Origin: Chlorokybus atmophyticus
Lineage: Eukaryota; Plantae; Mesostigma and Chlorokybus algae
Assembly (NCBI GenBank): GCA_009103225.1
Contig: RHPI01003642.1
Location: 517,116 to 581,115 of the forward strand
DNA: 64,000 nucleotides
Reading direction: 5' to 3'
Under the pieces are notes generated by a model. That model did no database searches, had not been told where the DNA came from, and saw only the letters and a list, made by a program, of their open reading frames with translations. The position numbers were made by a program, and so were the translations under genes. Shown here one piece after another: positions 2,943 to 55,068 of this stretch. How positions within the stretch are numbered: the stretch's first letter is position 1; each line of letters opens with the position of its first letter.

Positions 2943-3975
2943 TGTTGACATACACACGTGCAAGTGACACGCCAACAACATCAAACACAAGCATGACTGC
3001 TACTGCCGCCATAGCAGCCGCACACATGCTACATCGCAACCTACTTGTGCCTCCTTGTTACTCACGACCTTGTGGTATCTTGCAACTCCATCCTCAACCA
3101 CCCTTGTCAATGTAGCAACCTTGCGCACACCATGGCCATCTTTATGTCCACGTCCACATGCTTCTGTGTATAGCCTCCAAGCTTCACACCTCCAGGATGC
3201 TCCATGTCCAGCTTCCAAGTGATCACGCTTCCAGGATGCTCATCACGCTTCCTCGCATGCACCTTCAGCCAAGCACTCCACATGCTTCAACCAAAGTACC
3301 AAGCACTTAACCGTGCTTCACCATGGACTGCCCTCGCTCCCTTTCTCGGAAGGTCCATCAAACACTCCACCGTGCTCGACCTCAAGGGTTGCCATCTGCT
3401 CCCCTTCCTTCCACCAAGCACATTAACGTGCTTACCACGGGTTGCCTCTCGCATTCCTTTAACGCGCTTCACCACGCTCCACCAAGTATTCCTCGCACTT
3501 TGCAACACGAGCTGACATCTTCAGCTCCCACGAATCAAGGACGCCTCCTCTTCCAAGTACTTGACGTACTCTTCTTCAGTCACCAGAAGATCTCCATCAT
3601 CTCCTCCTCTTGGTCCATGTACTTCCGCATCTCCTTGTGGGCCAGTAGTAGCTCCATCTTCACACTCCAAGTGCTGTAGTCGTCAACGTCCAGTAGTCCA
3701 ATCGCGATCTTCAAGCCGTCCATGCTGGTGGCCTTGGTTGGTTGCCCTCTCTGCTCACAGACCTCACAACCCCACACTACCACAAAGCAACTACAGCTAC
3801 ACATACAATTGTAACACACTCCATCAACCTATACAAGCATGTGTGGGCCCATAACCTGTTGACATACACACGTGCAAGTGACACGCCAACAACATCAACA
3901 CAAGAGCATGACTGCTACTGCCGCCATAGCATCCGCACACATGCTACATCGTGACCTCTTATCTTCATTGCAACA
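2943..3975 (-). mobile_element. Miniature (internally deleted) Ty1/copia LTR retrotransposon
   Basis: 5' LTR 3857-3975 (119 bp, TGTTG...CAACA); PBS GGTTATGGGCCCA at 3844-3856(-); gag N-terminus MDGLKIAIGLLDVDDYSTWSVKMELLLAHKEMRKYM (DUF4219-like) from 3723; degenerate PPT ttgaggatggag; 3' LTR ~2943-3086. No TSD found. Confidence 0.8.
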
Positions 3976-4189: not shown

Positions 4190-4949
4190 CATGACTCGAC
4201 CGTCTTGCTAAGTCTGGAGCCCACGCGCTTCTTCCTGGTACCTTCGACCCTCGACTCCTGTATGAAGGGCAAGCTGACCGGATACAAGCATCACGCATGT
4301 AATACCTTCAATCTTGGAGGTGTGAAGCTTGGAGGCTATACGCAGAAGCATGTGGACGTGGCCATGGTGTGCGCAAGGTTGCTACATTGACAAGGGTGGT
4401 TGAGGATGGAGTTGCAAGATACCACAAGGTCGTTAGTAACAAGGAGGCACAAGTAGGTTGCGATTGCAGAGCCCGTGGGAGCTGCAAGTGGTGGAAAGCA
4501 AGTTGACTAGAGGAGTCATGGGCTGATACCAGCGGCGGAGGCACTGTCAACGAGGACAGATGCACCGGGTGCATGAAGGTAACATGTATGTACAGCAAGG
4601 AGCAAGGTTGGTGGTCAACCATGAGGCTCGAGTTGCTGTGGAAGTGAACGACTTCAAGGTCATCCATGAGAAGCATAGAGGCGTGAGAATAAAGGTGAAG
4701 GCTTGCGTGAGAGCAAGCGGTGTGCGTGAGTAATGGAGGAGCTGATGTTGAAGGACAAGCTGCCCGCGTGGGAGTGTTGAAGGTATTACATGGGTGATGC
4801 TTGTATCCGGTCAGCTTGCCCTTCATACAGGAGTCGAGGGTCGAAGGTACCAAGAAGAAGCGCGTGGGCTCCAGACTTAGCAAGACGGTCGAGTCATGTA
4901 TGAAGGGCAAGCTGACCGGATACAAGCATCACCCATGTAATACCTTCAA
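4190..4949. repeat. Fold-back of copia-derived sequence
   Basis: Arms 4190-4311 and 4777-4898 are near-identical inverted copies; partial third copy at 4895-4949; 4312-4464 is the inverse of 3033-3197; DSCMKGKLT resembles the copia pre-integrase CxxCxxGK motif. Confidence 0.85.
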
Positions 4950-5041
4950 CACAACGCGCTCCAAAGTAAGTCACAGGCACTATTCTAGCCTGGTGCAGGC
5001 TCAATTTGAACTATCTTTTTGGTGACTAATGCCTTGTCGGT

Positions 5042-8992: not shown

Positions 8993-9379
8993 NGTCGACA
9001 GTACGGTATTGTCTATTGCCTATCTTACCACCAGTCTTCACATGTGCAATAGTCAGACAGGTTCACCCCTTGCATGCTACATTCCTGTTACATAATCCTT
9101 ACGTGTATAGTATGTGACTGTGGGCGTGATTGCACATTGGCTGTATGACTGTACACATTCATGAGAGTGCATCAGTGCCTGACCACATGTACATTGCATT
9201 GCTTGTCAAAGTGTGTCACACATGTGTAAACTCTATGCAGCGACACGCAATGCGCAATGCCCGGAACTGCTAGTGACTGTTGCTGACTCTGCAGCTATTG
9301 CTATTTTCTTGCAAAATAGAAGCGCAATACTGTAGTCGTGTGGTTTACACTACAATAGCAACTACTCTGTGAGTTGCAA

Positions 9380-21100: not shown

Positions 21101-24100
21101 AAGCGCCACGCCCGACCTGGCGGGACTCAGCTGCAGCTCGTAGTCGGCAGGCCGGTCCGACACAACACGTAGCGTACGCGGCTCGGGGTTGCTGAGAGGT
21201 AGGTCTGATGTCACTGTGTAGATCACCTCGCTACCAGCGCGGCCGCCATCGCCTCCGATGTTGGGAACTTGGATGGTTTTGGACGTCGTCTTACGGGCCT
21301 GACAATCGATGACGATCAGGCCCTCGGACAGAGGCTCCTCTGCAACACCTTTGAGAGTAAAGAAGCTGTTCTCGCCGGAACCGCTGAAGCTCAACTGCAG
21401 CTCTGTGACACAATTGTGTCAATGACACCCACCCACACACACGCATGCACACACGCACACGCACGTCCAAATGCACACGCACATGCCCGCACATGGACGT
21501 GCACACCGCACAGCTACCTGTTACTAAGTGTCCACATCACTTCTTGCTCACCTCCGGTGCATTCTCCCATCCACGCCGGCCGGAATGTGACACTATACGC
21601 CCCGTTCTGTCCCGCGGGTACCGTCACCTCGCTCGGTCCCCCGAACGCGTTGTTTCCCGTGAGTCTCGCGGATGCCGTGAGCGGCCTGTCTCCGTTGGCG
21701 TTGACGATCGGGATGTCCTGGGAGCAGCGGCCGCGGGCGGGGCACTCGAAGTCAAGGGAGGAACGGGAGGAGGAAGAGGAGAGGGAGAGCTCGGCGTCGA
21801 GGAGACGGACGTCGAGGGGGGAAGTGAGGAGCAACCTGGTTGGATGAGGACATGTTGTTTGCGCAAGGCATTGAATGAGTTATTGAACACGCACGCACGC
21901 ACGCACGCATGCATGCATGTGCGCGCACGCATGCGCATGCACTCCAAAAGCATGCGCGCGTGCGCACACAGACGCGCACACACAACTAGCGCTATAATGC
22001 TGCAAGACCAACCTGACTGGGTACACGCCAGGGCCTTTATGGTTGAGCGTGAGCGGTACGCAGTTGCTGACAGTCACCCCAGCAACTTCACCTCCCCCCC
22101 CCCCCCCACCCCCACCCCCACCCTCTCCCCCTCCTCCTCCTCCTCCTCCTCCTCCTCCACTTTTGCCACCCGCAGGCGTCTTAGTCCCACTGCCACTGCC
22201 ACCTTCACGGGCGCCCTCGTACAGGACAACCTCGGCTGGCACAGACACGTACGGGGAGCTGCTGCGGACAGAGTACTTGACGGTACGGGAGGCAACACCA
22301 CCTTCTTGTACACCGGTTGCCCTGAAGCAGGTGTCACGCTTAGTAGTTATGTGTGCGTGTGCGTGTGCGTGCACGCATGTGTATGTGTGCCTGTGACACC
22401 AACATACACATACCTCATGATATCAGCCTGCTCCTTGATTCTGTACCCCGGGTGTCGTTCCATGAACATGCGCTTCGCAGCCTCAAATTGCTGGCTGACC
22501 CATGGCACGGGCAGCTCGCGTACGATCACGTTGTTGTTGTTGCCGGCGGATGCGCTGACAGCGGCCTCGCATTGGAAGCGCACCGGCGCGGAGGCTGCCG
22601 GCGTGGGCAGACGCGCGTCGCCGATTAGTAAGTATGTAAACTCGCCGAACTCCGCGTCCACGAAGATGAGCTGTTGAGAGAAGAGGCTGGTGAGAAGGTG
22701 AGAGAGGGCATGTGGATATGTACTTGTCAAGAATCAGTCGTATCTACATGTAAGGAAAAACGTGCACTGCAGTGAACTGGGCGCTGTACCTGGCATGCGG
22801 ACTTGCCAAAGGCAAACGGCAGGTAATGTATAGTCACCTGTAACATGGTTGCGAAGGTTTTGTTAATGCGCATATGTAGGACATTACACATACACTCACG
22901 AACAACACAACAACAGTTGTGCCAACACACCTTGCCAGTTTCTCCCTGTCGCAGTTTGAGTCTCGTCTTGTCACATCCAAAAGGCATTGGCCAGGTTGTT
23001 GTGACTGATCCGCCACCATCAACCACAGGCACACTCGGCATCTCTCCTCCCTCAGGTGGCTTTGCTACGACGCTCACAGCAAAGTCGCACTCGCCGGGGA
23101 ACGGGTTGACCACCTCCATATCCTGCGTCACATACTCATACATGGCAGCCGCTACCTCAAGCGTTCTCAGCGGCGTGCGCGAGTGCACTTGACACATGAG
23201 TGCGAACACGAGCGTAGCTGCGGGCGCCCCGGCCCCCGCGTTATTACTCTTGACTGAGGTGAGAGTCAACCTCGCCTCCTGTGCCTTAGCCACCTGCGGC
23301 GTGCACTGAACAGCAAACAACCCTCTACTCCTTGGCTCGAGCCGGATATAGCTTGCAGGAAGATCAAAGTCCTTAGCACCAGCGAGGCGTGCGAGGTACG
23401 CCACGGGACGAGTACCCGGGTTGGTTAGTTCAATGTGTTTGAGGAGAGTCTCGCCGAGACGGCCGGCGAAGGAGACAGGGGGTTGGCGAGGGATGAGTTG
23501 GGGAAGAGCGGACCAGAGGTAGAGGAGGAAGAGGAGTGATTCGCGGGGTTGAGGGCGTAATATGTCGTCTTCGTCGAGAGGGTAGGCTAGAGACAGGTCG
23601 CGGTAGAGTGATACAACAAGACGGGCGTTCTCGCGGACTTGAGACTCGTCGCGGCAAGGACGATGCAGCGCGCCCTCATTCGCACGCAATGATGGCCTGC
23701 ATAGTGGTGGTGAATGCTATCACTATGTCACACATAGGGCTCTGATGTTGTTGGGTTACTTGTACTGACCTGTGGGAGGCGAGGAGGGAGAAGAGGGCAA
23801 GGCCGTCGCGTAGGTGTGTGGTGAAGTTGGTGAGTCGGTAGTAGCACGAGGGTAGGACGATACGGAAGTGGTGGCTAGCCCAACGCAGAAGCACGCTCTC
23901 ACCCGGACTATATATGTTGCTCCCCGCATCTCCACCAACCGGCACCACAACGGGCGGGCACCCTTCCCCGCCAGTTCCCGGCAGAGCCTTGAGCGCCCTC
24001 GCCGTTACGCGTGAGAGCGCAAACACCCTCACCACCTGCGTGGCGACGGTGTACCACGCCGCCGCGGACACGTGGGCCCACACGCCTTCGAGCCTGCGCC

Positions 24101-27100
24101 AGTGGGCGATGTCGGTCTCATCAACGGCCTTGTCCTTGTCCTTGTCCTGCTCGCGGGCCGCCAGCACGCGCTTGAAGTCCTCCAAGTCAAGGAGGAACTC
24201 TGGCTTAACGGCGTTGAGGAGAGCCCCGCATGAGCGGAGGTGAACCAGGAGACGGTCGTACTGACCGAGGAGCTGCATCGCCTGCTCCTTCCTACTGTTG
24301 TGCTTGTTGCCACCGACGGTGTTACTGTTTCCGATAGAAGTCTTCGCGCCGACGCCGGCCTTGCTCCAAGCAAAGGGCTTACCAGAGAGAAGCTCCACGA
24401 GGTCGACCATCGCGCGGCCCTTGCACGCGACCATCTCCATAGGCATATTGCCGACGTCACCCCATGCACGACTGGTAGTGGCGCTCAGCCACCTCAACAG
24501 CGCTGGTGATGCACTCGCAGATGATAGAGCCTCCTCAGATACAACTGGCATGCGGAACCCTTCAACCCCAGGCACAAGCATCACTGCCTTGGATTCTGCC
24601 AACAGTCAATAACTGTTAGTTCGTTGCAAGTGTCTTTGCTTGCAGGAGGAGATAGTGTTAGGTATCTCCATCACGCACCGCTGGGAGCGTCAAGCCGCAA
24701 GAGGGATTCGTTTGTCTGCACAAAGTGGTGGGTGGTGAGAAGGCAGGCATCAGCAGTGCCGGTGACGGGTATGCTGAAGACGCCTGCGCCGTCGTCCGTA
24801 AAGTCTATCCGCGCCGTGAAGGACATCGGCTTGTCCGACACAAAGGAGACCTCCACAGGCAGCCGCGCCTTTGCAATGCCTGTGATTCAGGTACTCATTT
24901 CAGTGAGGTGTACATGTTGGGGGGTGTATCAATGGTATGATGTCACATACCAATCATGATGCCTTCGGGGAAGTGAACCTCAATGGGCACGCGTGTCTGG
25001 TCGACGGGTAGCTTGTACTTGAGCTCGAGGTTGTCGTATCCCTGGTTGATGACAGTGAACTTTGCGGTCGCTTTGACGCCGAGGGGGACCGCGGGTAGCG
25101 CCACCTCACGCGTGTCAAAGCAGAGCCGCGGCATCGCGCCCGTCCCGCGCACCTCAAGCTCGAGGTACGGCTTGTCCATCCCGGCGATGGCCAACGGGAG
25201 AGTACAGGAGTAGGTTATATTCTCACGCGGGGAGAAGACTGCACGCACTGTTGATATTTCTCCAGGTGCTAGCTTTCCCATCACAGGCACCAGCTGGAGG
25301 GCTCCCTTGAGAGCCTCCAGCGGGTCTGTGTTAAAAGACCAATCTATAACAACACTGTCGTTGTTGCGTATGGTGAAGTCAACGGCGTACGGTATCTTCT
25401 TGACGGTATCTCTCAGCACGATGCGGCTGCCAAACTCGACGCCAGTTTTGCTAAGAAGCAGCCGCGGCTTCAGCCCCTGCGCCGATACGCTCCTCGCCAG
25501 CTGGCTGTTGTCGCCGTTGCCCCCCGCGATGGTGAGAGGGAGCGGGAAGGAGAACGCCGAGGCGATACGCCGAGGACGGAAAACCATCGCGAGCTTGAGC
25601 TTCTGGTTCGGGGCGAGCGTGATGGCGTATCGGTTGAGAGAACCTGGAGGTAAATCCTGATCGTCACTGTCATGCTCCTCCTCCTCTTGCTCGACCTCGG
25701 TGGTCTCGGGGCCGTAGTCGAGCGCGAACTCGGGTCGGTCGGCAAGGTCTAGCACGAGCGACGCGGGTACAGAGCTGGTGTTGTTGAGCGAGAGGTCGTG
25801 TCGGGCGGCGCCACCAATGTACACACCCCCGAAGCTAATTTCGCCCTGCTCTACGGTCACACTGGGCACGACCGCCTCTGCTTTCACAGCAAGCTCCAGA
25901 CCCCTCTTATCACCTCCTCTGGTAACAGCCTTTACGCGTATATCCACCGGGCCCTTTGTTGTCGGCTCCAACACCAGTTCCATCTCCAATGTGGTTCCCC
26001 CACTCACTCGGCCTCTATCAGGAGTCACCTTCAACACGCCTTGCAGGGAGGCCTGGTCGATGAGGAAGACGGCGTCGTTGCCAGCGGGGTTCTTGAGCGT
26101 GACGGTGCGTGCGTGAGGCATCCCTGTGGAGACAATCCCAAAGTCCACACCCTCCTTCTCCTTGAAACCGCAGTGCCCGTCGGCCTTCTCCCCACGTAGA
26201 CGCACCCTCTTGCCCGCGCCCCCACCGCCACGCACCATCAGCGTGATGGACCCCTCGTAAGCCGCTCCCCCAGCCAATGCACCCTTACTCCCACTCGTGC
26301 TGTTCACGCCGGGTGCCCACGTAATTGTCACGGGTAGCGAGGCCTTCTTCTGCACCTCCCCGTGTTGGGGACTCACCGTGAAAGGGATGGCTGCGGGCGG
26401 GGCGGGAGTGTTGCCTGTTGGGTTGGAGCTTGGAGGTCGCTCACCCGCACCCTCCCACCAGAAGGACACCGCGTGGGCGTTGGTGTTGGTTATTACTATC
26501 GTCTCCTGAACGCTCGGGTCCCAGTTGTCCGGGCTGAATGTGAAGTCCACCTCCTCCCTGCAACCCATCAGTTCCCGCAAATAAGTAACTCACTACAATC
26601 GCATACAACATTGAATATCACATAAGCCTGTACCGTGACAGCTTTAGAGATACTGGCACGACGTCCGCCTTGACATCAAAATAGAATGTGTGCGCGGCAC
26701 CGTTGATGGAGTACGCCACAGTGCGTCGGAAGGCTCCGATTGCATTAGACACAAGAACAACATTGAATCCTGCTGTGGCTCCCGGTCCCACAACCTGCAA
26801 ACAATCCCAAAGTCACCACGACAGCGCTCAACAGCAGTAAGTCTAACAACTCTTCACCTGACAGTGAGGAGAGGTCTCGGTGAGGTCAGGGCAGCTCTCA
26901 AGGTTGAGATGCACAAGGACGGCGCGCGTGAGACCGTTGGAGACTGTGAGCCACCGCGTGGTCTGCGCTGTGGCAGACACTGGGCCAAAGTCCAGCACGC
27001 GCGGACCAACAGCCACCTTCACTATGTCCGAAGGCTGCAAGTAACGGTTGAGTAGGTAATAGTAATATGAATGACGCGCACACACACACACACACACACA

Positions 27101-30031
27101 CACATGCCTACCTGAAGAGGTGCAGCACAGTCTTTGACTTCCTGCGTTGTCGCCGGCTTGCTATGCCACCTTGATCCCCCTGGCCTTCCCTCTCCCTCCC
27201 ACGCCGGCATATTCCTCGGCCTCACCGGCGCCATCATCTCTGTATCAGGTCTCACAACGACAGCAGCACCTGCTGTTGGACCCTGTGGCAGCGGCAGCAC
27301 AGGTGGCGCGAGGCCCGCGGCGGGACGCATGCCGAGGTGGAGGTCGTCTTCGGGTGGCGGGAGAGGGAGGCTCCGCTTGTCACGCAGAGAGCGAGAGGCG
27401 CGAAGGTAAGACACGTACGCCGTACGATGCATGTGCTGCTTCTCGAGGTCCTCGGCGAGCATGGTGAAGTCCGTGATGGGACCCAAGTGCTCCTCCTCCC
27501 AAGGGTGCTTACGCTCGAAAGGTTTCAACTTGAACTCGGCGGGCGCATCAGGGTCCACGTAATGCCTCGGCTGCGCATGGTAGTGTGTGTCAGTCAGATT
27601 GTAGACACGAAAAGTGATACAACTCACTGATACAATCACCACTATACTCACTCTGATGAAATCTTCTCGGATTTTGTCGGGGCCGCCGAGTGTGTTTATT
27701 CTGGGTCCCAGGAGTGGGGCAGACCCATGTACAGAGAGGGTGAGCTCATGTAGTAGGACGCCCTCGTTGCGTGTGCTCCACACACGCACGCGCACGGTTT
27801 CACGGTGGGTTCCGAGGGCCCGCGGCGCAAAGGTCAGCACCATGTCCGCACTCTGACCCGGCTGCAGCCGCCCCCTCCCAGGCCGCGCAGCGAAGGATGG
27901 GGATGAGGAGGACAGCGTGAAGGACAACGGCACAGCTGTCTGAGACTGAAGGGATACGAGGGTGTCGAGACATGTGGATGTTGGAGTTGCCCCGAAGGAT
28001 ATCGCAATGGACGGCGATACCACCAGCTGCACACATGAGAGTCCAGTCAGTGACTTTGCTGCAAACTGTTTAGCCCTTTGGTCACTTATACTTGCCACAC
28101 GAGGTTGCGTTACTGACCCAAATCAGTCCCGAAACACAAAACATGCAGTATATATCCGTAGGGAAAACACCCATCAAACCAGTAGCTTGTGCTTGCCTGT
28201 GCTTTGCAGGCTTGTGCCGTGACCGGCAGGCGTAGTGGCGTCTCTGGCGAGCCGTCGGAGGTGACATTGAGTGCACAAGTTAGATCCTCAACGAGCGGCT
28301 CCTTCTCTGCAAGTGTGGCAAACCCTTTGGCTCTGTCCTGCTGCTTGGGCGCGAAGGTCACGGTGAACGGTGCGAAAGAGAAGGGTGGGACTGTGCCGGA
28401 GGCGGGGGAGATGGAGAAGCCCATGGTGGTGGGGTTGGCGTTGTTGGTGGCGGTGGAGTTGGAGTCGGTGTTGTCATTGGTGGGAGATGGTGATGAGGTG
28501 CTAAGAGCTAGCGTGGCGGTGTAGGTGATGGGGTTGGGGCCGGCGTTGTGCACGGCGGCGGGAAGGACGTGGCTCTCCCCGTGGCAGAGTGGGGGGAAGG
28601 CTAAGGCCAGGAGAGGCTGTCTTTGAGCCTTGAAGGTGTTGGTTGTGGCCTTAGGGTTGGGTTCAATGTCGGTGACAACATCAAATGCTGCCGGCACCGC
28701 CACAGCCGTCACCTCCACGGGCACGGCGCGTCCCTCGGGTGAAGCCCTCACGTTCACGCGGCCGTACACCGCCCCCGCTGCCCCGGACGACGCAAGCCTC
28801 GCCACCACCTCCTGTTGTCCCGCATGCATGTAAGCGTAAACAATCACGCATGCATGTTGGATTATACTATGTGTGTACCTGTCGGCTGGCGGGTGGGATT
28901 GTGCCGCTGCGCGGGTCGACATCAACAGGTACAGCCTCGCGGTCGTACTCGACCTCAAACGGCGTGGCAGCCAACCTATTCCTGTTGACTATACTGAACA
29001 CTTTCTCCCCTCCCCTCCCAGCTCCATCAACCCCACCCTCCCCCTTGTCCTGTCCACCCATAGGCACATAGCCAAAGTCGAGAGCCGCAGGCTCCACACT
29101 CAACTGACCCTCCCCTCCCCCAACCCCACCAACTCTCCCCACCAACGGCACCCCAACGCAACCCTCCTCTACCTGAACCAACAACGTGTCGAAGTAGTCA
29201 TGCTTCAAAGTGTCATTAACACCAACACCTCCCTCCCCTCCTCCTCCTTCGGGTCCTGTTGTTGTGTTGTTTGGTGGTTCGAATATCACTTCAATGGCGG
29301 CTTCGAGGCCCGGCGCAAGACGCAAGGTCTGGCTGTTGTTGGAGTGGGCCAAGCGAAAGACGGGAAGGGCGGGACGGAGGACGCGAAGCGTGCGGGCGCG
29401 GGGACTGACATTGCGGACGCGAAGGGAGAGAAGGCGGGGAGCGTGTTGAGCATCGTGCGTCTGAGGAAATGGCAAGGTAAGGGTGGTGCATGGTGTATGT
29501 GAGAATGTATCTAAGGCTCCAGTGCGCTTCCTTGCCATAACCCGTGTTTGGTGTGTTCTTCAATGGCTGATCTTGGCTGATGCTAGTTGCATGAATGTTT
29601 TTGACAGTATTGACCTTGGTTACAAACACTTGCAGTGAACACCTTACCAACATGGTCCCAACTAGATACCAGCGTGCATATTGCCTTGTTGTCATACACT
29701 GTAGGAATATCTTATGAGTTGGAATGCGCAGCAAGGTAATAATCATGGAGCGTCACCTGTACAGCTTCGAATTCCAGCTGAGCGGGGAGTACGCGCAGGA
29801 AGGAGCTCGCAGCATCTGGTGCGATTGTGGCTCCCTTGCCCCCCAGGCTGCCTCCCGTGGTAGACAGTTCTTGAGAGGCCACCATTGTTGTGGCTAAGGT
29901 ATAGATTGCTTCATTTCTGGTTGAGCCTGAGGGGTGAGAAATGCAAACCAGCCGTTGTAGCGAATGGCTTGCAGCCTGGAGCGGCCCAGTTGCAGATCAG
30001 CTGTTCAAGGTGTTGACCCCTTCTTCAACAT
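18126..30031 (-). CDS. CFAP47: Cilia- and flagella-associated protein 47 (multi-exon; ASH/Ig-like repeats and calponin-homology domains). Start codon uncertain (~29900-30031)
   Basis: N-terminal LRVLPAQLEFEAVQ/LRVRNVS...LAPGLEAAIEVIFEP; Ig-like repeats (YSINGAHTFYFDVKADVVPVSL, FGGVYIG, LKHIELTNP); CH domain VLLRWASHHF...LTNFTTHLRDGLALFSLL; C-terminal FTVSFSPREYGRVLVARLIIQTEEMDWMYEIRG. Confidence 0.9.
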
Positions 30032-40094: not shown

Positions 40095-41335
40095 GCTGAA
40101 ACGAAAGAAAGAGTCGAGAGCACTGCTTGAATTTAAGTAGTAGACAGTAGTAGGCTGACAAGAAGGCACTGAGGAAAGTACAAAGGAGGCGTCGCAAACA
40201 CCCCCTGTGCTTTCCTGACTTCTTATGTGATGCGAAACCAAAGAATGATGATCCAGACATAGATCCGAGACCACCCCCCTTCTTGCCTACCCTCCTGTCC
40301 CTCCCTCTACCTGTTTTGCGCTGCCCTCAGATGCAAGCCCAGCAGGTTGGCACAGGAGACCAACAAGCACTCGAGCCGTGTGCACGGGGTTAACAACAGC
40401 TGCAACCACCTGAAAGCTTGCAAGAACAACAAACCCCACACGTCAACTCTCAACTCAATCTGCAAAGGGGCGATCACTGCAACACATTGCTGACAGTGCA
40501 CCGACAATTCCAAGCCCATTACTCCTCACCTTCTCACCCACAGCGACGGCTCTACCTCACGCACAAACACCTGCTCCCTTTTTCAACCCCCTTCTCCGAG
40601 GGCGCCCCTCCTTCCCCTTCTTATGACCTCCCTTCTCCGCACCCCCCTCTGCTCTGCCCCCCACACCTCCTCAACCTCTCCGCCGCCGCCCTGCACACGG
40701 AGCGCCCCGAGGCCTTAGGCTGTGTGATGGCTTGATGGCTCCGCCCCCCCCCCCCCCCCCCCNNNNNNNNNNNNNNNNNNNNNNNNNNNNNNNNNNNNNN
40801 NNNNNNNNNNNNNNNNNNNNNNNNNNNNNNNNNNNNNNNNNNNNNNNNNNNNNNNNNNNNNNNNNNNNNNNNNNNNNNNNNNNNNNNNNNNNNNNNNNNN
40901 NNNNNNNNNNNNNNNNNNNNNNNNNNNNNNNNNNNNNNNNNNNNNNNNNNNNNNNNNNNNNNNNNNNNNNNNNNNNNNNNNNNNNNNNNNNNNNNNNNNN
41001 NNNNNNNNNNNNNNCCCCCCCCCCCCCCAAGTTGGGATGGAAATGGCTGTCAACAACCCAACGCCAGCCCAGCTTTAGCACTGCTCTGCTCTGCGCCGCT
41101 CACGTGGCCTGTCTATAGAGAACGACGACGTTTCACTCGGACATCGACGTGACGCTTGCGATGTAGCGGTTGTTGACGTCGATATCACCGGCAGCCTAGA
41201 ATTGTCGGGCATTGTTGCGTCGCCGTTCGACGTTGACAGGGGAGACGCTGCGTTCCATTGGTCTGACATGACATTCGCTTCTGCTGTAGGTTGGGTTGTT
41301 AGGGATTCAAGCAGGGGCGGGAAAAGGGCCTGCCT

Positions 41336-41376
<41 letters not shown>

Positions 41377-41934
41377 GGTGGTGGAGGCTGTGAGAGCGGG
41401 GGTAGGTATGGGCATTTTTGTGTACACCTTGATAAAAGGGGGCGTTACCTTCACGTGAGAAAAAACTATGGAGAGGGGAGACTGGCCAGTTGTGTGTGCG
41501 CCCACTGGCTGGGTCGCGCTGTGTGGTTGATGGCTGCTGTAACCGTCTGGAATCTGTGTGCAGTTTGCTGATGCTGAGCGGCATTCAACAGCAGCTTGTA
41601 GCCGTTTGGCCATTTTCCTGTGCTGCGGTCGGGTTTGGTATTGAAACGGCTTTTCTTTTGTCAAGCATACAATTTGTGCAAAATGTTTTCGAAGAATAGA
41701 TGTTCAACAAATCGGCGTCACGCACAGTAGGCGGATCGGCGGCCTGTCTTAAGCACGTAATGGAATCCCTCACAATATTCATGTGCATGTCAAGAGCTGC
41801 ATTGCGCCATTGGTAATTACAATGTAGTGATTTGGCCGCTTACCGCCACAGCTATGGCAGCAAACAATGCGGGAGCAGTAGCGCATGCAACGTGACATAT
41901 TATGATGCAAATCGACACAGCTCTTATGCAGGCC

Positions 41935-44182
41935 ATGGAGATGGCCTCAGCTCAGAGTCTGCACTGCCGGCAAGCAGCACCCTCTCACCACCACCACAGC
42001 TGTCCCAGTAACCATCACACAACAACCAGAAGCACACACAGACATCGCTTGCCAGCTGACACAGCCAGACAGGCTTCCAGAATTACACCTGCAAAGCTCA
42101 TCACCCGGTGCAGTTCTTCCTCACACGAGTCCAACTTCGCCTTCATCGGCGGTGTATTTGGTAAAAAGAAGCCCGCTGAGTCCGAGGCTGAGCTCGCCCC
42201 TCCCCCTCCTCTCCCAACCACAGAGAAGTACACCGTCAAGCGTGGCGACTGGCTGTCGTACGTGGCCAAGGACCGCGGCATCTCATTCGAGGCGCTCGAG
42301 GCACTCAACCCAGGAGTCAACCTCGACTACGTGCTCCCGGGAGACGTCATCACCGTGCCGATACGACCGGGAGCCTTTGTTGCCGCCAGCCTGGACACCG
42401 CTACTAAGGCCGTCGTGACCGAGTACAAGAAGGAGGTCAAGCAGGCAGCAGAAGCCAGGGTAAGGGCTCTTCTTTTGCATCTTGCCTATGACTGACACAA
42501 CAACATGTTGACGTGTGGAATGCGTGTGTGCGGTTTCACAGGTTGCCAATCAGTCGACCTCAGACACGTATACAGTTCAATCTGGCGATTATCTCTCGGG
42601 CATTGCCGAGAGGCAGGGCATCACGACGAGGGAGCTTCTCGACCTGAACCCTCAGCTGAACTACTACTCTGATCTATACGTTGGCGAGCAGGTAAAAATT
42701 CCGTACATGGCTCCCGCGCCGGTGTGCCCGCCTCCCCCTCCCAGCGCGAGAGCCAACAACAAGGGTGGGCTGGACCTGCTCGGCTTCACCAAGACCGAGA
42801 CCTTCACCATCGTGACTACTCTCGGCCAAGTCATCCAGATCTTTGCCATCTTCTGGTGGGTTCAGAGACGCAAGACCGTCGTGCTCGAGCAGGATGAGGG
42901 TTACTACGTGCCCTTCTCCCTCATCAACCCCATACGCGCGACCCTCGCCGGCGACAGGCCCTTTGTGAGGACACGCGGGCCAACGCAAGAGCGACTCCTC
43001 GTCGAGTCCTACAAGGTCTTCAAGGCCATCTTCCCCATTCCGGGCGTGTTCAACGTGGTCGAGAGCATTGCTGGTACAGTCGTTGAAGCCGTCAGCCCCA
43101 CCGTCAAAGCGGTCGCGAGCAGCGTGTCCAGCGTGGTGAGACCGAAAGCTCCCGACAACGGCGTGGACACAACGTTGGAGACTCCACCACGCCCAATACC
43201 AAAATCAGCACCAGCGCCGGCCCTGGCTGCATCACAAGCAACCAAAGCAGCAGCGCCGCGCAATACGATGACATCTAAGCCACTTGTGGCCACGCCAACC
43301 CCACCTCAGGCTCACACTCAGCCTCAAATCCCAACAGCGGGCTCGAAGCCCACAGCGGAGGTGACGGCGGCGGCGATATCTGCGGGTATGGCAGATGTGA
43401 TGCCGATGAGTTACGGCTACTCCGCCAAGCGTAACGTGTCGGACGCGGTGATGGAGGCGTGTTCAGTGGCTGCGTTCAAGCTGGAGAGAGCGTCGCCCTC
43501 CCTCGCCCTCATCGCCGGGGACGCGCTCATGCAGGGAGACTCGTCCCGCCAGCTGTCTAATGACATGCTCGCGTCGGCACGCTCGGCCCTGCCAGACAGC
43601 TGCGAGGTGTGTGGCGTGAGCACGAGCAGCAGCGGGGACACAACTCCTACCGGCAGTAGCAATGGCACGGCGGGCGTGTCGGTCCTGCTGTTCGGCACCG
43701 CGGACAGTCTCTTCTTTGCGAGCGAGGCTGCGGAGCAGTACGGCGTGAACTCTATCGTGTTGGAGGCAGCCCGAGCGGCGGGCCGCGCCATGCGTGAGCA
43801 GGCGAAAGGGAGGGCTCTCAAAGCAATTGTGTTCTCTGCCCCGCTCGGGAGCGACGCCGCCGCCATTGAGGGACTCAAGAGGGACTTCCCGGACCTCCCC
43901 GTTTACGGCGTGACCGCCATCAGCATGGATGATGAGGACCATGGCATCATTGGCAACAACAACAGCAGCAGCAGCAGCAGCGGCCAGCAGCAGCAAGCCA
44001 GCTGGAGCGTGGTTTCGAACAATGCTGTGCACACGTTGCCCGGAATCAGCGTGTTCGGCGTGGCTGCGGATTCGCGCTTCAGCGCAGCCACCTTTGCAAC
44101 TGTTGTAGCGCAGTTCTTGTTTGGGAGGAGCTCGTATGTGAGAGCAGCACCGCCGACCGCACCCGCCTTGACTACGGCGTGA
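41935..44182 (+). CDS. Predicted plastid membrane protein: transit peptide, 2 LysM domains, TM helix, Pro/Ala/Thr linker, FIST_N-like domain (~721 aa; alternative start 41902)
   Basis: Exons 41935-42459 and 42542-44182; LysM1 YTVKRGDWLSYVA...LNPGVNLDYVLPGDVITVP; LysM2 YTVQSGDYLSGIA...LNPQLNYYSDLYVGEQVKIP; TM TFTIVTTLGQVIQIFAIFWWV followed by QRRK; the FIST-like call for the C-terminus is less certain. Confidence 0.8.
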
Positions 44183-45173: not shown

Positions 45174-45332
45174 ACACCTTACGCGTGCATGAGTAGCAAG
45201 AATAAGCTGCTCGCACAATACCGTCAAGAGTACAACTAGGCTAGCATAATCACACCTTATGCGTGCATCAGTAGCAAGAATAATCTGCTCGCACAATAAC
45301 GTCAAGAGTACAACTAGGCTAGCATAATCACA
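45174..45332. repeat. 78-bp tandem duplication (2 copies)
   Basis: acacctta.gcgtgcat.agtagcaagaataa.ctgctcgcacaata.cgtcaagagtacaactaggctagcataatc at 45174 and 45252. Confidence 0.9.
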
Positions 45333-51040: not shown

Positions 51041-51894
51041 TATTAATTGCATCTTTCTCATCAAAATGCCTTATTTTAAATGCGTAACAAAGAAAGCACG
51101 GAATGCATGCTTATATTTCGTTAGCATCAATGACACGTATGTTTATCAGATACATAAGCTCTTGTTAAGTACACACATATGTTAATTCTTGATGTGAGTA
51201 TAAAAAGCCGTCATGTGTATACATGTATGTACATACACAATACAACTACGTAGCAATTACTGTTATTATGCATTCAATTATATTACATGCAAAATGCAAG
51301 TGTGACAACATAATAAACACGGCGAAAGTTTGTAGGCGCATATTATTGGCGAGCTTATGCTACTATATCATTTGCTTGACCATGTGCATCACATAAAGCT
51401 TAAATGCAATGTGCAATCATCATATGTGCCTCTAGCGCTGCTAACATGCTACACACTTCACCTGTGGTGTACGTATATCCTTTGATGTTCAAAAACCAAT
51501 TGTGTGCATGCAACTGTGCATTGTGACATCCAGCATGGCAACACTAGCATTCTGGCATTTAGCTAATGTCATGCATACATCCCAACTTCTGTGCATTGTG
51601 ACATGCAGCCTGGCAATACTAGCAATTGCATGGACACATCTCGACTTTTCTGCTGGCACGCCGTGCATGCGTTTGTGAAGGACATGGCATTAGGTAGCTT
51701 TGGCATAGATGATTCACTGCCGCAGCATGCGCCACACTGTGATGGCAACAGCAATGATCTTTCCCTAGTGTTCCCTAGCAGCAGGTAACGTTAACGTTAG
51801 TGCCCCCTGATAGGTGACTCGCTAGTGTCCCGCGGCACTGGCGGTGGCCCAGCCTAACGTGTACCAGCAACAACGGCCTAGCTTGCTGCAAGTC

Positions 51895-54800
51895 ATGGAC
51901 GCGGGCGGCGGCGACGTTGGTGGAGGTGAAGGAGGAGGAGGAGGACGAGAGTCAAGGCTACCGTTCGAGAGGGTGCTCGTCACAGGAGCGGCGGGCTACT
52001 TGGGCAGCAACCTCGTGCGGGCGCTGCTGAGGGGCTTGCCTTCCTCGTCCGGCAGCGGCTTCGTCCGAGCGCTAGACCGCCGCCCCTGCCCCAGCGGCTT
52101 GGCCCAGCACAAGGCGCTCAAGTACCTACAGGGTGACCTCACCGACCGGGCTTTCGTGCGAGAGGCTTGCAAGGATGTGCAGGTAGACAACTGAGTGGTT
52201 GCTTGGGGCTCGTGGCTAGGCATGCATGCAAGTAGCAGTTGCTGCAGGCAGCGCGATGGAAAGCGCCGTTTTGCATTCACTTGGGTGTCATTTTGTGCTT
52301 TGATTCATTTTGTTTTCTTCTGCTTCTTTCCTTTCTTGCAATTGACATTGGTGGGTTGGTTGAGCAGTTCGCTTCACATGTTAGCGGCTCGTTTGAGTCG
52401 TTATTGGTTGTGCGGCCGTTATGTTTGTTGACCTATGTGCCTGAAGAGTATAATAGTGCATGCTCAGCAACACTCGCGTTACAACTCGAATGTACCCAGT
52501 AGCATGCACAATCAAGTTGCTCATGCTATGTGTGCGATGAAAAGCGCTCCATCATCGTATGCACTTGCGAGCGCTGACAGGATGCTTATGCTACGTAAGC
52601 CCCCCCCCCCCCACACCGCTACTAAGGCCGTCGTGACCGAGTACAAGAAGGAGGTCAAGCAGGCAGCAGAAGCCAGGGTAAGGGCTCTTCTTTTGCATCT
52701 TGCCTATGACTGACACAACAACATGTTGACGTGTGGAATGCGTGTGTGCGGTTTCACAGGTTGCCAATCAGTCGACCTCAGACACGTATACAGTTCAATC
52801 TGGCGATTATCTCTCGGGCATTGCCGAGAGGCAGGGCATCACGACGAGGGAGCTTCTCGACCTGAACCCTCAGCTGAACTACTACTCTGATCTATACGTT
52901 GGCGAGCAGGTAAAAATTCCGTACATGGCTCCCGCGCCGGTGTGCCCGCCTCCCCCTCCCAGCGCGAGAGCCAACAACAAGGGTGGGCTGGACCTGCTCG
53001 GCTTCACCAAGACCGAGACCTTCACCATCGTGACTACTCTCGGNACAAGTCCGCAGTCACAGTGCACGCACGCGGTGGCAGCTTAGTTACAAGGCAAGTT
53101 TCTTACACAGTGGCTGCTGGCTTTCCACTCTCGTTTATTATTAAACATGAACACAACTTGCAGAGCCCCGCATAGTAAGGGCTGGCAGGATTGTAGAAGG
53201 AATGAGGCGGGGGGGAACTTGCTTTGAAACTTATTTTTGGGAACAGCAGCAGTACTGGCACCTTGACTTTGTAACATGCATATACACAGCTGGTGCTACT
53301 TCCAGTGCTTGCAACAAGGCATACTGTGTTTGAAGAAACGTCACTTCCAGGTGGTGTTCCATGTGGCTTCAGTAATCAGCACAGTTGCTCCGTACAAAGA
53401 ATTGAAGCCTTCAAATATCGACGCCACCACGATGCTTCTGGAAGCATGCCAGCAGGCAGGAGTCAAAGCGTTTGTATACACGTCATCTACAGCAGTCATT
53501 TTTCAGGTGAATTCGTAAACTATAGACGCACACGCAAAGGAGGTTGCACTTTGCAGGTTGCATCCAGCAGTTGGCACATCTGCATGGCAGATTGTCCATG
53601 GTGCGGGCTATAAGTAGTACTACATACAGTGGCTGCAGGCGTTTGCTGATCTGGTGCGTCATGTGCAGGGCCAACCCATTTACAAAGGTGATGAGACCAT
53701 TCCCTACCCAGATCCCACCAAGTATGTGGATGGCTACTCCTTGTCGAAGCAAAAGGCGGAGGAGTTGGTGCTTGCGAGCAATGGCAAGCAAGACGTGGCG
53801 ACTTGCGCGCTTCGCGCAGCAGGCTTCTACGGTCCTGACGAGCTGGTCCATACTGCGCGCGTCTTGCGTTTGGCAAGTACGCGCTGGTTCTGCTTCTGCT
53901 TCTTCTTCAGCTTTGATGCTTGTAAGATATATCTGGCAACTTAGCTTCATGTGGCTGGCTTCCTTCAGCATGCCTAGGACTCATCAATCACGTTGTACTT
54001 GCAGAATTGGGCTTGCTGCTGTTTGCTTGCGGCAATGGGAACTCCCTGACGGACTGGGTGTACATTGATGATCTGGTGGATGGGCACGTGCTAGCCGCCG
54101 TTGCCCTCATGAACAGCAATCGACGCGAACGTGTTTCTGGACAGGCTTATTTCATATCTTCACATGAAGCTATCGATTGCGGAGACTTCTTCAAGTTAGT
54201 CAACAGTCACTGGCCCTCCTTTGCATGCATTCTGCTTGTTTTAGTCTGCCATCATTCACCTCGGTGCGTCTTCATCACTGCAGGCCTATTGTTAAGCAGC
54301 TGGGATATGAGTTTCCCACTGTGCGAATGCCCTTCCGGCCGCTCTTCGCCTTTGCAACCATCATGGAGTTTCTGTGGTTGGTGCTGCGCCCCATAGGCAT
54401 TGACATGCAGCAGATGCCCCTATTTCTGTCGCGAAGTGAAGTTGTCAAGCTCTGCACTCCACACTTTTTTAGCTCTGCAAAAGCTTCCCGCGACTTCAAC
54501 TATGTACCAGGTGCTTTGTCAAGTCTACAAGCAGTCCACAAGCACAGCGGTTTGCAGTGCCTGCAGTGCTTTAGTTGAGGTGTTACTCCTGGTAGATGCG
54601 GCAACAAGTTGCTGATGCTCTTCTGCAGGCAAAACCAAGGCTACTGAGGGCTTGCAGCTCACCATTCCATCGTACGTCAAGACATATGCGACGCCGCTTG
54701 TTCGCGGAGAGCACTTCATAGTGCCATCCTTGTGGTGGTGGCTGTTGATAGGCGTCGGGTTGTTTCAGCTGTACTTGTGTGCGTTCCAGCCTGCCCTCAT

Positions 54801-55068
54801 GCAGCAGTACACGCCTTGGCTGGGTGCGTATGGCGCGCTTCTGGAGTGGTTCATGTCAAGACCCATGCTTCTTTACGTCATATGGTACGCGGCCTGGCTG
54901 GCGCACGTAGCGGAAGGGGGTCTCGCGCTCAGGGAGAGCCGCAGCCTCAACCATAGCTGGCGCGTGAGCCTTTACTGGTTCGTGCAAACGTTTCTGCTTG
55001 GCTTCCCAAGCTTCAAACTGCTGCTGGCGATCAAGAGGCGAGATGTAAAGCTGCACAAGACTGCGTAG
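51895..55068 (+). CDS. 3-beta-hydroxysteroid dehydrogenase-like extended SDR (SDR42E1-like) with C-terminal TMEM254/DUF4499-like membrane region, 6 exons
   Basis: VLVTGAAGYLG, VFHVAS, FVYTSS, catalytic YSLSK, ALRAAGFYGPDE, DWVYIDDLVDGH, GQAYFIS; C-terminal AWLAHVAEG...YWFVQTFLLGFPSFKLL. Confidence 0.88.
52613..53043 (+). repeat. 431-bp identical copy of LysM gene segment 42395-42825 inside SDR intron 1 (probable assembly artefact)
   Basis: Appears identical at offset 10218; begins after a C-run and ends at a single N. Confidence 0.85.

Follow-up and report, generated by a model that had tools for sequence, protein, structure and literature searches.

Proteins that join LysM domains to a transmembrane (TM) segment are an established theme at the chloroplast envelope of green algae. 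Chlamydomonas LMR1 (Cre09.g393765) has two LysM domains and was localised to chloroplast-envelope patches in the protein atlas paper, whose tables list it with 202 amino acids, one predicted TM segment and a predicted chloroplast location. Two further proteins of the Chlamydomonas envelope are EYE2, with the order transit peptide-LysM-TM-thioredoxin, and MIN1, with the order C2-TM-LysM. A gene for a protein with a similar LysM-TM layout lies in a stretch of 64,000 nucleotides from Chlorokybus atmophyticus (contig RHPI01003642.1 of assembly GCA_009103225.1, positions 517,116 to 581,115, forward strand), called the window throughout. Its predicted product combines a presequence, two LysM domains, a putative TM segment, a long linker and a C-terminal domain homologous to the FIST_N part of bacterial FIST proteins. 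The parts are of known kinds, and the combination of LysM with a FIST-like domain is new, conserved and rare. Protein searches returned no full-length relative and a literature search gave no paper that mentions both LysM and a FIST domain, in keeping with a preliminary description of this DNA, made from its letters, in which the architecture was thought to be undescribed. A literature search for FIST domains in algae, chloroplasts or Chlamydomonas gave no mention among the ten top-ranked papers.

Other proteins share parts of this layout. EYE2 and MIN1 carry one LysM domain each, their partner domain is thioredoxin-like or C2 rather than FIST-like, and their role is eyespot-specific. LysM ectodomains, as in the plant LYK/LYM receptor proteins, bind polymers of N-acetylglucosamine (GlcNAc), and plastid DipM is a LysM protein that acts on plastid peptidoglycan (PMC4015805). 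In the window protein Pfam and NCBIfam found no kinase, glycosylphosphatidylinositol (GPI) signal or M23 peptidase, and its N-terminus does not read as a signal peptide.

On the FIST side, the stand-alone bacterial proteins of Myxococcota/Polyangia, exemplified by the database protein P0002, have a FIST_N part homologous to the algal domain and the same predicted fold class. They are soluble, have ~400 residues and comprise FIST_N, FIST_C and a GGSAADH motif, whereas the algal domain is without FIST_C and GGSAADH and is apparently membrane-tethered behind LysM domains. In NosP, a FIST domain with haem senses nitric oxide (NO); its haem binding has no visible counterpart in the algal domain. 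In FBXO22, a eukaryotic FIST domain serves protein recognition rather than small-ligand sensing. The structure of FBXO22 shows the FIST domain as three structural repeats around a pseudo-threefold axis, with the substrate recognised by repeat 3. This domain (PDB 8ua6, 8ua3, 8s7d) is the best structural match of the model of the algal domain, and it differs in its three repeats, the third of which is absent from the algal protein, in its fusion to an F-box and in having no detectable sequence similarity.

Homology of the C-terminal domain to FIST_N

The C-terminal domain escapes standard annotation. Pfam FIST_N (PF08495) gave no match to the isolated domain even at E<=10, and NCBIfam gave none. 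Word-index protein searches found nothing with the C-terminal region 285-546, nothing even at E<=1 with region 430-546 minus most of its low complexity, and no related protein of 300-955 residues; a query made from an alignment added just two further FIST proteins and two algal exon fragments. Matches at E<=1e-3 came from an exhaustive phmmer search of 1.84 billion representative proteins, with the sequence from the TM segment to the protein end as query. There were three: P0001 (8e-5), P0002 (1e-4) and P0003, a 129-residue fragment of an algal orthologue. Pfam certifies P0001 as a FIST protein (FIST_N, 4.5e-19) and likewise P0002 (FIST_N, 4.6e-24, and FIST_C, 6.2e-17). P0003 led to an orthologous locus on a Logan contig (L001), and a second fragment, P0006, led to another on a metagenome contig of the Joint Genome Institute (L002).

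Profile comparisons agree with the phmmer result. A hidden Markov model (HMM) of bacterial FIST sequences only was built from 25 sequences, namely four database proteins and 21 genomic relatives of P0002, all of them from Myxococcota/Polyangia. It scored the window domain at 56.1 bits and the spliced domains of L001 and L002 at 36.2 and 31.8 bits. Of 1000 shuffles of each sequence that kept its composition, the best reached 7.5, 12.6 and 7.9 bits, respectively. When the HMM was scanned against all six frames of the window, the C-terminal open reading frame (ORF) was the sole significant match (E 6e-16). Alignment of the three algal with four FIST sequences by hhalign gave a probability of 97.0% (E 8.6e-11), and the identity of the algal domain to the bacterial FIST_N part is ~30%. 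By these comparisons the C-terminal domain is homologous to FIST_N and not a chance resemblance. The likeness to FIST_N that the preliminary description had remarked on is thus one of descent, though Pfam misses the domain.

A structure model points the same way. The AlphaFold2 (AF2) model of the domain has a mean predicted local distance difference test score (pLDDT) of 74.5 and a predicted template-modelling score (pTM) of 0.74. Its top PDB matches in Foldseek were to the FBXO22 FIST domain (8ua6_C, E 3.9e-6, probability 1.00, TM-score 0.47 query-normalised), followed by Toblerone-fold cyclic amide hydrolases, the same structural neighbourhood that the FBXO22 structure paper gives for FIST. 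The 32-row alignment behind the model consists mostly of bacterial FIST rows, so the fold match corroborates the sequence evidence and is not independent of it; a single-sequence control (pLDDT 40) was uninformative. A PDB sequence search with FIST profiles gave no match because FBXO22 is too distant in sequence.

In the model the domain has two consecutive beta-alpha-beta-alpha-beta-beta repeats, at about 43406-43693 and 43709-44062, and a conserved FATVVxQxLxG motif closes it. It also holds a coded poly-Asn/Ser/Gln insert, in which a (CAG)~11 repeat at 43963-43995 encodes a Ser/Gln run. A sequence pattern (..A.A....R..LP....(G)..) recurs in both halves, in the window at 43403-44125 and in L001 at 3342-3695 and 4682-4990. 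This internal repeat is so strong that MAFFT misplaced exon pieces of the orthologues.

A FIST domain of two repeats

The algal match covers positions 6-204 of the 400 positions of the profile over the three sequences, and 6-180 for the window domain. All three algal proteins end ~25 residues after the FATVVxQxLxG motif, where the match also ends, and no FIST_C-like ORF turned up when the window, L001 and L002 were scanned in six frames. The algal domain corresponds to FIST_N alone, with two of the three repeats that make up the FIST fold. The FIST fold expected from the preliminary description is predicted for these two repeats; the third is absent. In place of the GGSAADH motif, conserved at 90% or more in the bacterial relatives, the window protein has YGVTAIS and the orthologues have YAISES. 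Across the three algal domains 62 positions are invariant, among them no His, one Cys (Cys67, in LPxxC) and one Tyr. In the repeat-1 loop there is a CxxC motif (CEVC) in the window protein and C-x5-C in the orthologues; the first Cys alone is invariant. No output or enzymatic domain was found in the window protein or the orthologue loci by Pfam, NCBIfam or six-frame scan.

These features bear on the function first suggested for the gene, in which LysM domains in the envelope intermembrane space would read plastid peptidoglycan and a stromal, haem-binding, NosP-like FIST domain would signal to plastid division or signalling. The LysM domains are genuine, the C-terminal domain is homologous to FIST_N, NosP is a precedent for NO sensing by a haem-FIST protein, there are LysM proteins at plastid envelopes, and with DipM there is one that works on plastid peptidoglycan. 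However, with two repeats out of three, no FIST_C, GGSAADH lost and no invariant His, NosP-like haem sensing is unlikely from the sequence, and the analogy to NosP is left without support; an output domain is lacking too. The closest bacterial FIST relatives are not in obvious kinase operons, as the gene neighbours in the two myxobacterial loci checked are unrelated enzymes, with no kinase or other signalling genes among them. Furthermore, Chlamydomonas, the alga of LMR1, EYE2 and MIN1, is according to the atlas paper without most peptidoglycan synthesis genes, and the same paper suggested that LMR1 binds other glycans. That the best-studied envelope LysM proteins come from such an alga argues against a need for peptidoglycan. 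The topology was argued from the QRRK that follows the TM segment, and this is weak (see below). As a whole, a peptidoglycan and haem sensor is distinctly unlikely. The closest bacterial FIST relatives (L003-L023) belong to Myxococcota (Polyangia, Polyangium, Enhygromyxa), not to cyanobacteria.

Orthologues and constraint

Both orthologues have their parts in the same order: a basic presequence, LysM1, an intron, LysM2, VCPAPxPxCPAP, a TM segment followed by basic residues, a linker and the FIST-like domain. Their linker is long and rich in acidic residues, Pro and Ala, and their FIST-like domain is split over three exons. L001 and L002 are closely related, and the domains of each share ~30-45% identity with those of the window protein. 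Between the two, identity is 72%, 89% and 79% in the FIST-like exons, 51% in exon 1 (presequence and LysM1) and 38% in the part comprising LysM2, TM segment and linker, which makes the FIST-like domain the best-conserved part of the protein. The ratio of non-synonymous to synonymous substitution rates (dN/dS) between L001 and L002 is 0.15 in the FIST-like exons, where the synonymous rate (dS) is 0.94, and 0.34 in the linker. Such purifying selection marks the C-terminal domain as functional and constrained.

No further locus was confirmed when metagenomes were scanned twice, once for a conserved peptide pattern of the C-terminal exon and once for one of LysM1, so the family, at three loci, is rare in current data. 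In both orthologue loci an F-box protein is encoded just downstream on the opposite strand (L001 6724-8175, L002 14136-15641), that of L002 with a PI31_Prot_N-like N-terminus. The only solved FIST structure is also of an F-box protein, FBXO22. A counterpart of the F-box/PI31_N neighbour is absent from the window, and the neighbour is probably local synteny of two close relatives only.

Presequence, LysM pair and membrane segment

The first 64 residues of the protein are basic, rich in Ser, Thr and His and nearly devoid of acidic residues, and have no hydrophobic core. In the three orthologues the presequence is 64-84 residues long, with 8-16 Lys and Arg against 2-3 Asp and Glu; the best 10-residue Kyte-Doolittle value of the N-terminus reaches -0.1 for the window protein and 1.5-1.8 for L001 and L002. 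Neither a twin-arginine motif nor the hydrophobic domain of lumenal targeting was seen in the presequence. It is transit-peptide-like in composition, as the first reading of the DNA had it. That reading also holds for the LysM pair, the single putative TM helix with QRRK and the long linker behind it. Both LysM domains score above the Pfam gathering cut-off of 20.9 bits, and a motif in LysM1, NPGVxLDYV, is common to the window protein, L001 and L002. After LysM2 follows a Cys/Pro-rich VCPPPPP, with VCPAPxPxCPAP in its place in the orthologues. Only one stretch of the window protein is strongly hydrophobic, TIVTTLGQVIQIFAIFWWV, and QRRK comes after it. The equivalent segments of L001 and L002 are clearer (Kyte-Doolittle 1.76 and 1.84) and are followed by KGKK or SK. 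Some 175 residues of linker, mostly of low complexity, separate the membrane segment from the C-terminal domain, and neither Pfam nor NCBIfam has a match in them.

The order LysM-LysM-TM-intracellular domain is also that of LysM receptors, and the Cys/Pro-rich stretch after LysM2 fits such a protein. The protein could then sit in the plasma membrane as a kinase-less analogue of a LysM receptor or as a wall anchor, with the LysM domains outward on chitin-like, GlcNAc or microbial glycans and the FIST-like domain in the cytosol. The N-terminus speaks against this, as it has no signal-peptide hydrophobic core and is long, basic, poorly conserved and transit-peptide-like, and LMR1, the Chlamydomonas counterpart in LysM-LysM-TM layout, is found at the chloroplast envelope. 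A cell-surface location is considered unlikely.

Composition separates the chloroplast and mitochondrial presequences of green algae poorly. The protein might also be mitochondrial or thylakoidal, with LysM domains that serve in contacts between proteins and do not bind glycans. In the EYE2 study a protein-protein role was proposed for the LysM domain of EYE2, which favours the second half of this reading. Set against it are the absence of a twin-arginine or lumenal signal and the fact that the only localised analogues are envelope proteins, which make a mitochondrial or thylakoid protein quite unlikely. With LMR1 and EYE2 as guides, a plastid-envelope location is plausible.

Proposed role

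The reading preferred here is an envelope LysM anchor of the LMR1 type, joined by a flexible linker to a two-repeat, FIST-derived binding module that would serve in tethering or recruitment; by analogy with the known envelope proteins, it has about an even chance of being right. The protein would be an organelle-targeted, single-pass membrane protein. On one face of the envelope it would be held by its LysM pair to a glycan that contains GlcNAc or else to a partner that is glycosylated; the glycan would be peptidoglycan only if the alga makes peptidoglycan. On the opposite face, the FIST-like module would bind a protein partner or a small metabolite. Two FIST repeats could not close the pseudo-threefold barrel alone, and the fold or binding site would probably be completed by self-association or by a partner. 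As enzymatic and output domains are lacking, the protein would tether, cluster or recruit at envelope patches rather than act as a self-contained transducer.

Several points weigh against this anchor-and-recruitment reading. Localisation and topology are drawn from analogy. The presequence would suit a mitochondrial protein just as well. In the window protein the hydrophobic segment is borderline, with a mean Kyte-Doolittle value of 1.61 over 19 residues, and its flanks carry charges of +2 and +3, basic on both sides and not decisive for topology. A simple stop-transfer import would leave the LysM domains in the stroma and not in the intermembrane space. Because of these flank charges and the stop-transfer route, the sides assigned in the preliminary description, which took the QRRK to face inward, are not secure. 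The likeness to LMR1, whose presequence, two LysM domains and one TM segment repeat the layout of the N-terminal ~290 residues, rests on published length, domain content and TM count, not on an alignment; LMR1 is without the linker and the FIST-like domain.

A further and more novel reading would make the protein a trans-envelope sensor unique to a few green algae. The LysM domains would read a glycan of the intermembrane space, be it peptidoglycan or another GlcNAc polymer, and the TM segment would couple them mechanically to a stromal, FIST-derived, ligand-binding module whose third repeat is supplied by a partner, linking the state of the envelope or wall to plastid division or signalling. 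This is regarded as very unlikely.

Gene model and locus

The gene consists of two exons, read from two ORFs on the forward strand in different frames (41902-42495 and 42515-44182), from an ATG at 41935 to a stop codon at 44180-44182, with a spliced product of 721 residues (Table 1). The donor (CCAGG|GTAAGG, GT at 42460) and the acceptor (TTTCACAG|GTT, AG at 42540-42541) are both canonical, and the phase-0 junction joins ...AAEAR to VANQSTS... Other possible in-frame start codons for exon 1 lie at 41902 and 41941; the orthologue proteins begin MA.SA, which resembles a start from the ATG at 41941. The position of the intron between the two LysM domains is common to the window gene and the orthologues. 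The GC content at third codon positions (GC3) is 0.72 in the coding sequence, whereas the intron has a GC content of 0.48 and the 3' flank one of 0.46.

Table 1. Features of the LysM-FIST gene and its product in the window (window positions)
Feature	Position	Strand	Basis
Exon 1: presequence, LysM1 and inter-LysM helix region	41935..42459	+	ORF; donor GT 42460; colinear tblastn match to exon 1 of L001 and L002
Presequence, transit-peptide-like	41941..42132	+	Composition, hydrophobicity; little conservation vs L001/L002
LysM domain 1	42229..42360	+	Pfam PF01476, 34.6 bits, E 1.9e-8
Intron, 82 nucleotides, GT..AG, phase 0	42460..42541	+	Frame change between ORFs; GC 0.48 vs GC3 0.72
Exon 2, including stop codon	42542..44182	+	ORF
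LysM domain 2	42569..42703	+	Pfam PF01476, 42.6 bits, E 5.9e-11
Single hydrophobic, putative TM segment and QRRK	42806..42874	+	Kyte-Doolittle
Linker: juxtamembrane stretch, then Pro/Ala/Ser/Thr-rich low complexity	42875..43402	+	Sequence not conserved among orthologues
FIST_N-like domain, ~240 residues, alpha/beta	43403..44125	+	phmmer, bacterial-FIST HMM, hhalign, AF2 and Foldseek, six-frame scan

The gene is a real nuclear gene, green-algal and lineage-restricted. Exact look-up of the exon-1 ORF gave no database match, and an Rfam scan of the whole window gave none. A TGTAA 54 nucleotides past the stop codon was considered as a chlorophyte marker and rejected as weak: the window has roughly one such motif per kb, and none stands near the stop codons of the orthologues.

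It could be asked whether the LysM and FIST-like parts belong to one protein at all, or whether the gene is a pseudogene or a product of misassembly. There are N gaps and homopolymer runs nearby, and a misplaced, 99.5% identical 438-bp copy of 42395-42832, found by blastn, lies at 52613-53051 on the same strand. However, LysM2, the TM segment, the linker and the FIST-like domain are all within one unbroken exon of 1.64 kb, two further contigs, independent and from different samples, have the parts in the same order, and there is purifying selection and a strong GC3 signal. An artefact is exceedingly improbable.

The source of the 438-bp copy extends from the last part of exon 1 through the intron and LysM2 into the TM segment. 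The copy sits in an intron of a 3beta-hydroxysteroid dehydrogenase (3beta-HSD)-like gene, bounded on the left by a C13 run and with a single N at 53044; it probably arose by misassembly or by a very recent duplication of part of the gene. Elsewhere, N gaps (40763-41014 and ~50.7-51.0 kb) have long C/G homopolymer runs on their flanks that read as poly-Pro/poly-Gly ORFs, and single Ns stand at 8993, 17327, 36691, 51004 and also 53044. The gaps and runs suggest a short-read scaffold of moderate quality. One N gap lies ~900 bp upstream of the start codon, a (GCG)13 microsatellite lies in the 5' region (41336-41374) and a 78-bp tandem duplication lies ~1 kb downstream of the gene (45174-45332).

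The contig, with its LysM genes, long GC-rich exons and short introns, is algal and not human. The neighbouring genes are eukaryotic. Long exons at 22727-28958 on the reverse strand, with CFAP47, CFAP65-type Ig, ASH and Cep192-like domains, belong to a large flagellar-associated protein gene, from which the organism is taken to be flagellate. The neighbours also include an MFS transporter exon, the 3beta-HSD/NAD-epimerase family gene (four exons, 51844-54393, forward strand) that harbours the 438-bp copy, and after it a TMEM254-like ORF (54652-55065, forward strand).

Significance

As far as the present searches reach, no photosynthetic eukaryote had shown a FIST-related domain before this one, which is also the first form they gave with FIST_N alone and a membrane tether. 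Since Pfam misses it, it would stay unannotated in algal genomes. The rarity of the family, with three loci, limits its general importance. Among green-algal envelope proteins with LysM and TM segments, a cut-down FIST would be a third kind of soluble module. If the LysM side of the protein faces a glycan layer, the family would offer a handle on the nature of that layer and on whether its state is reported across the envelope.

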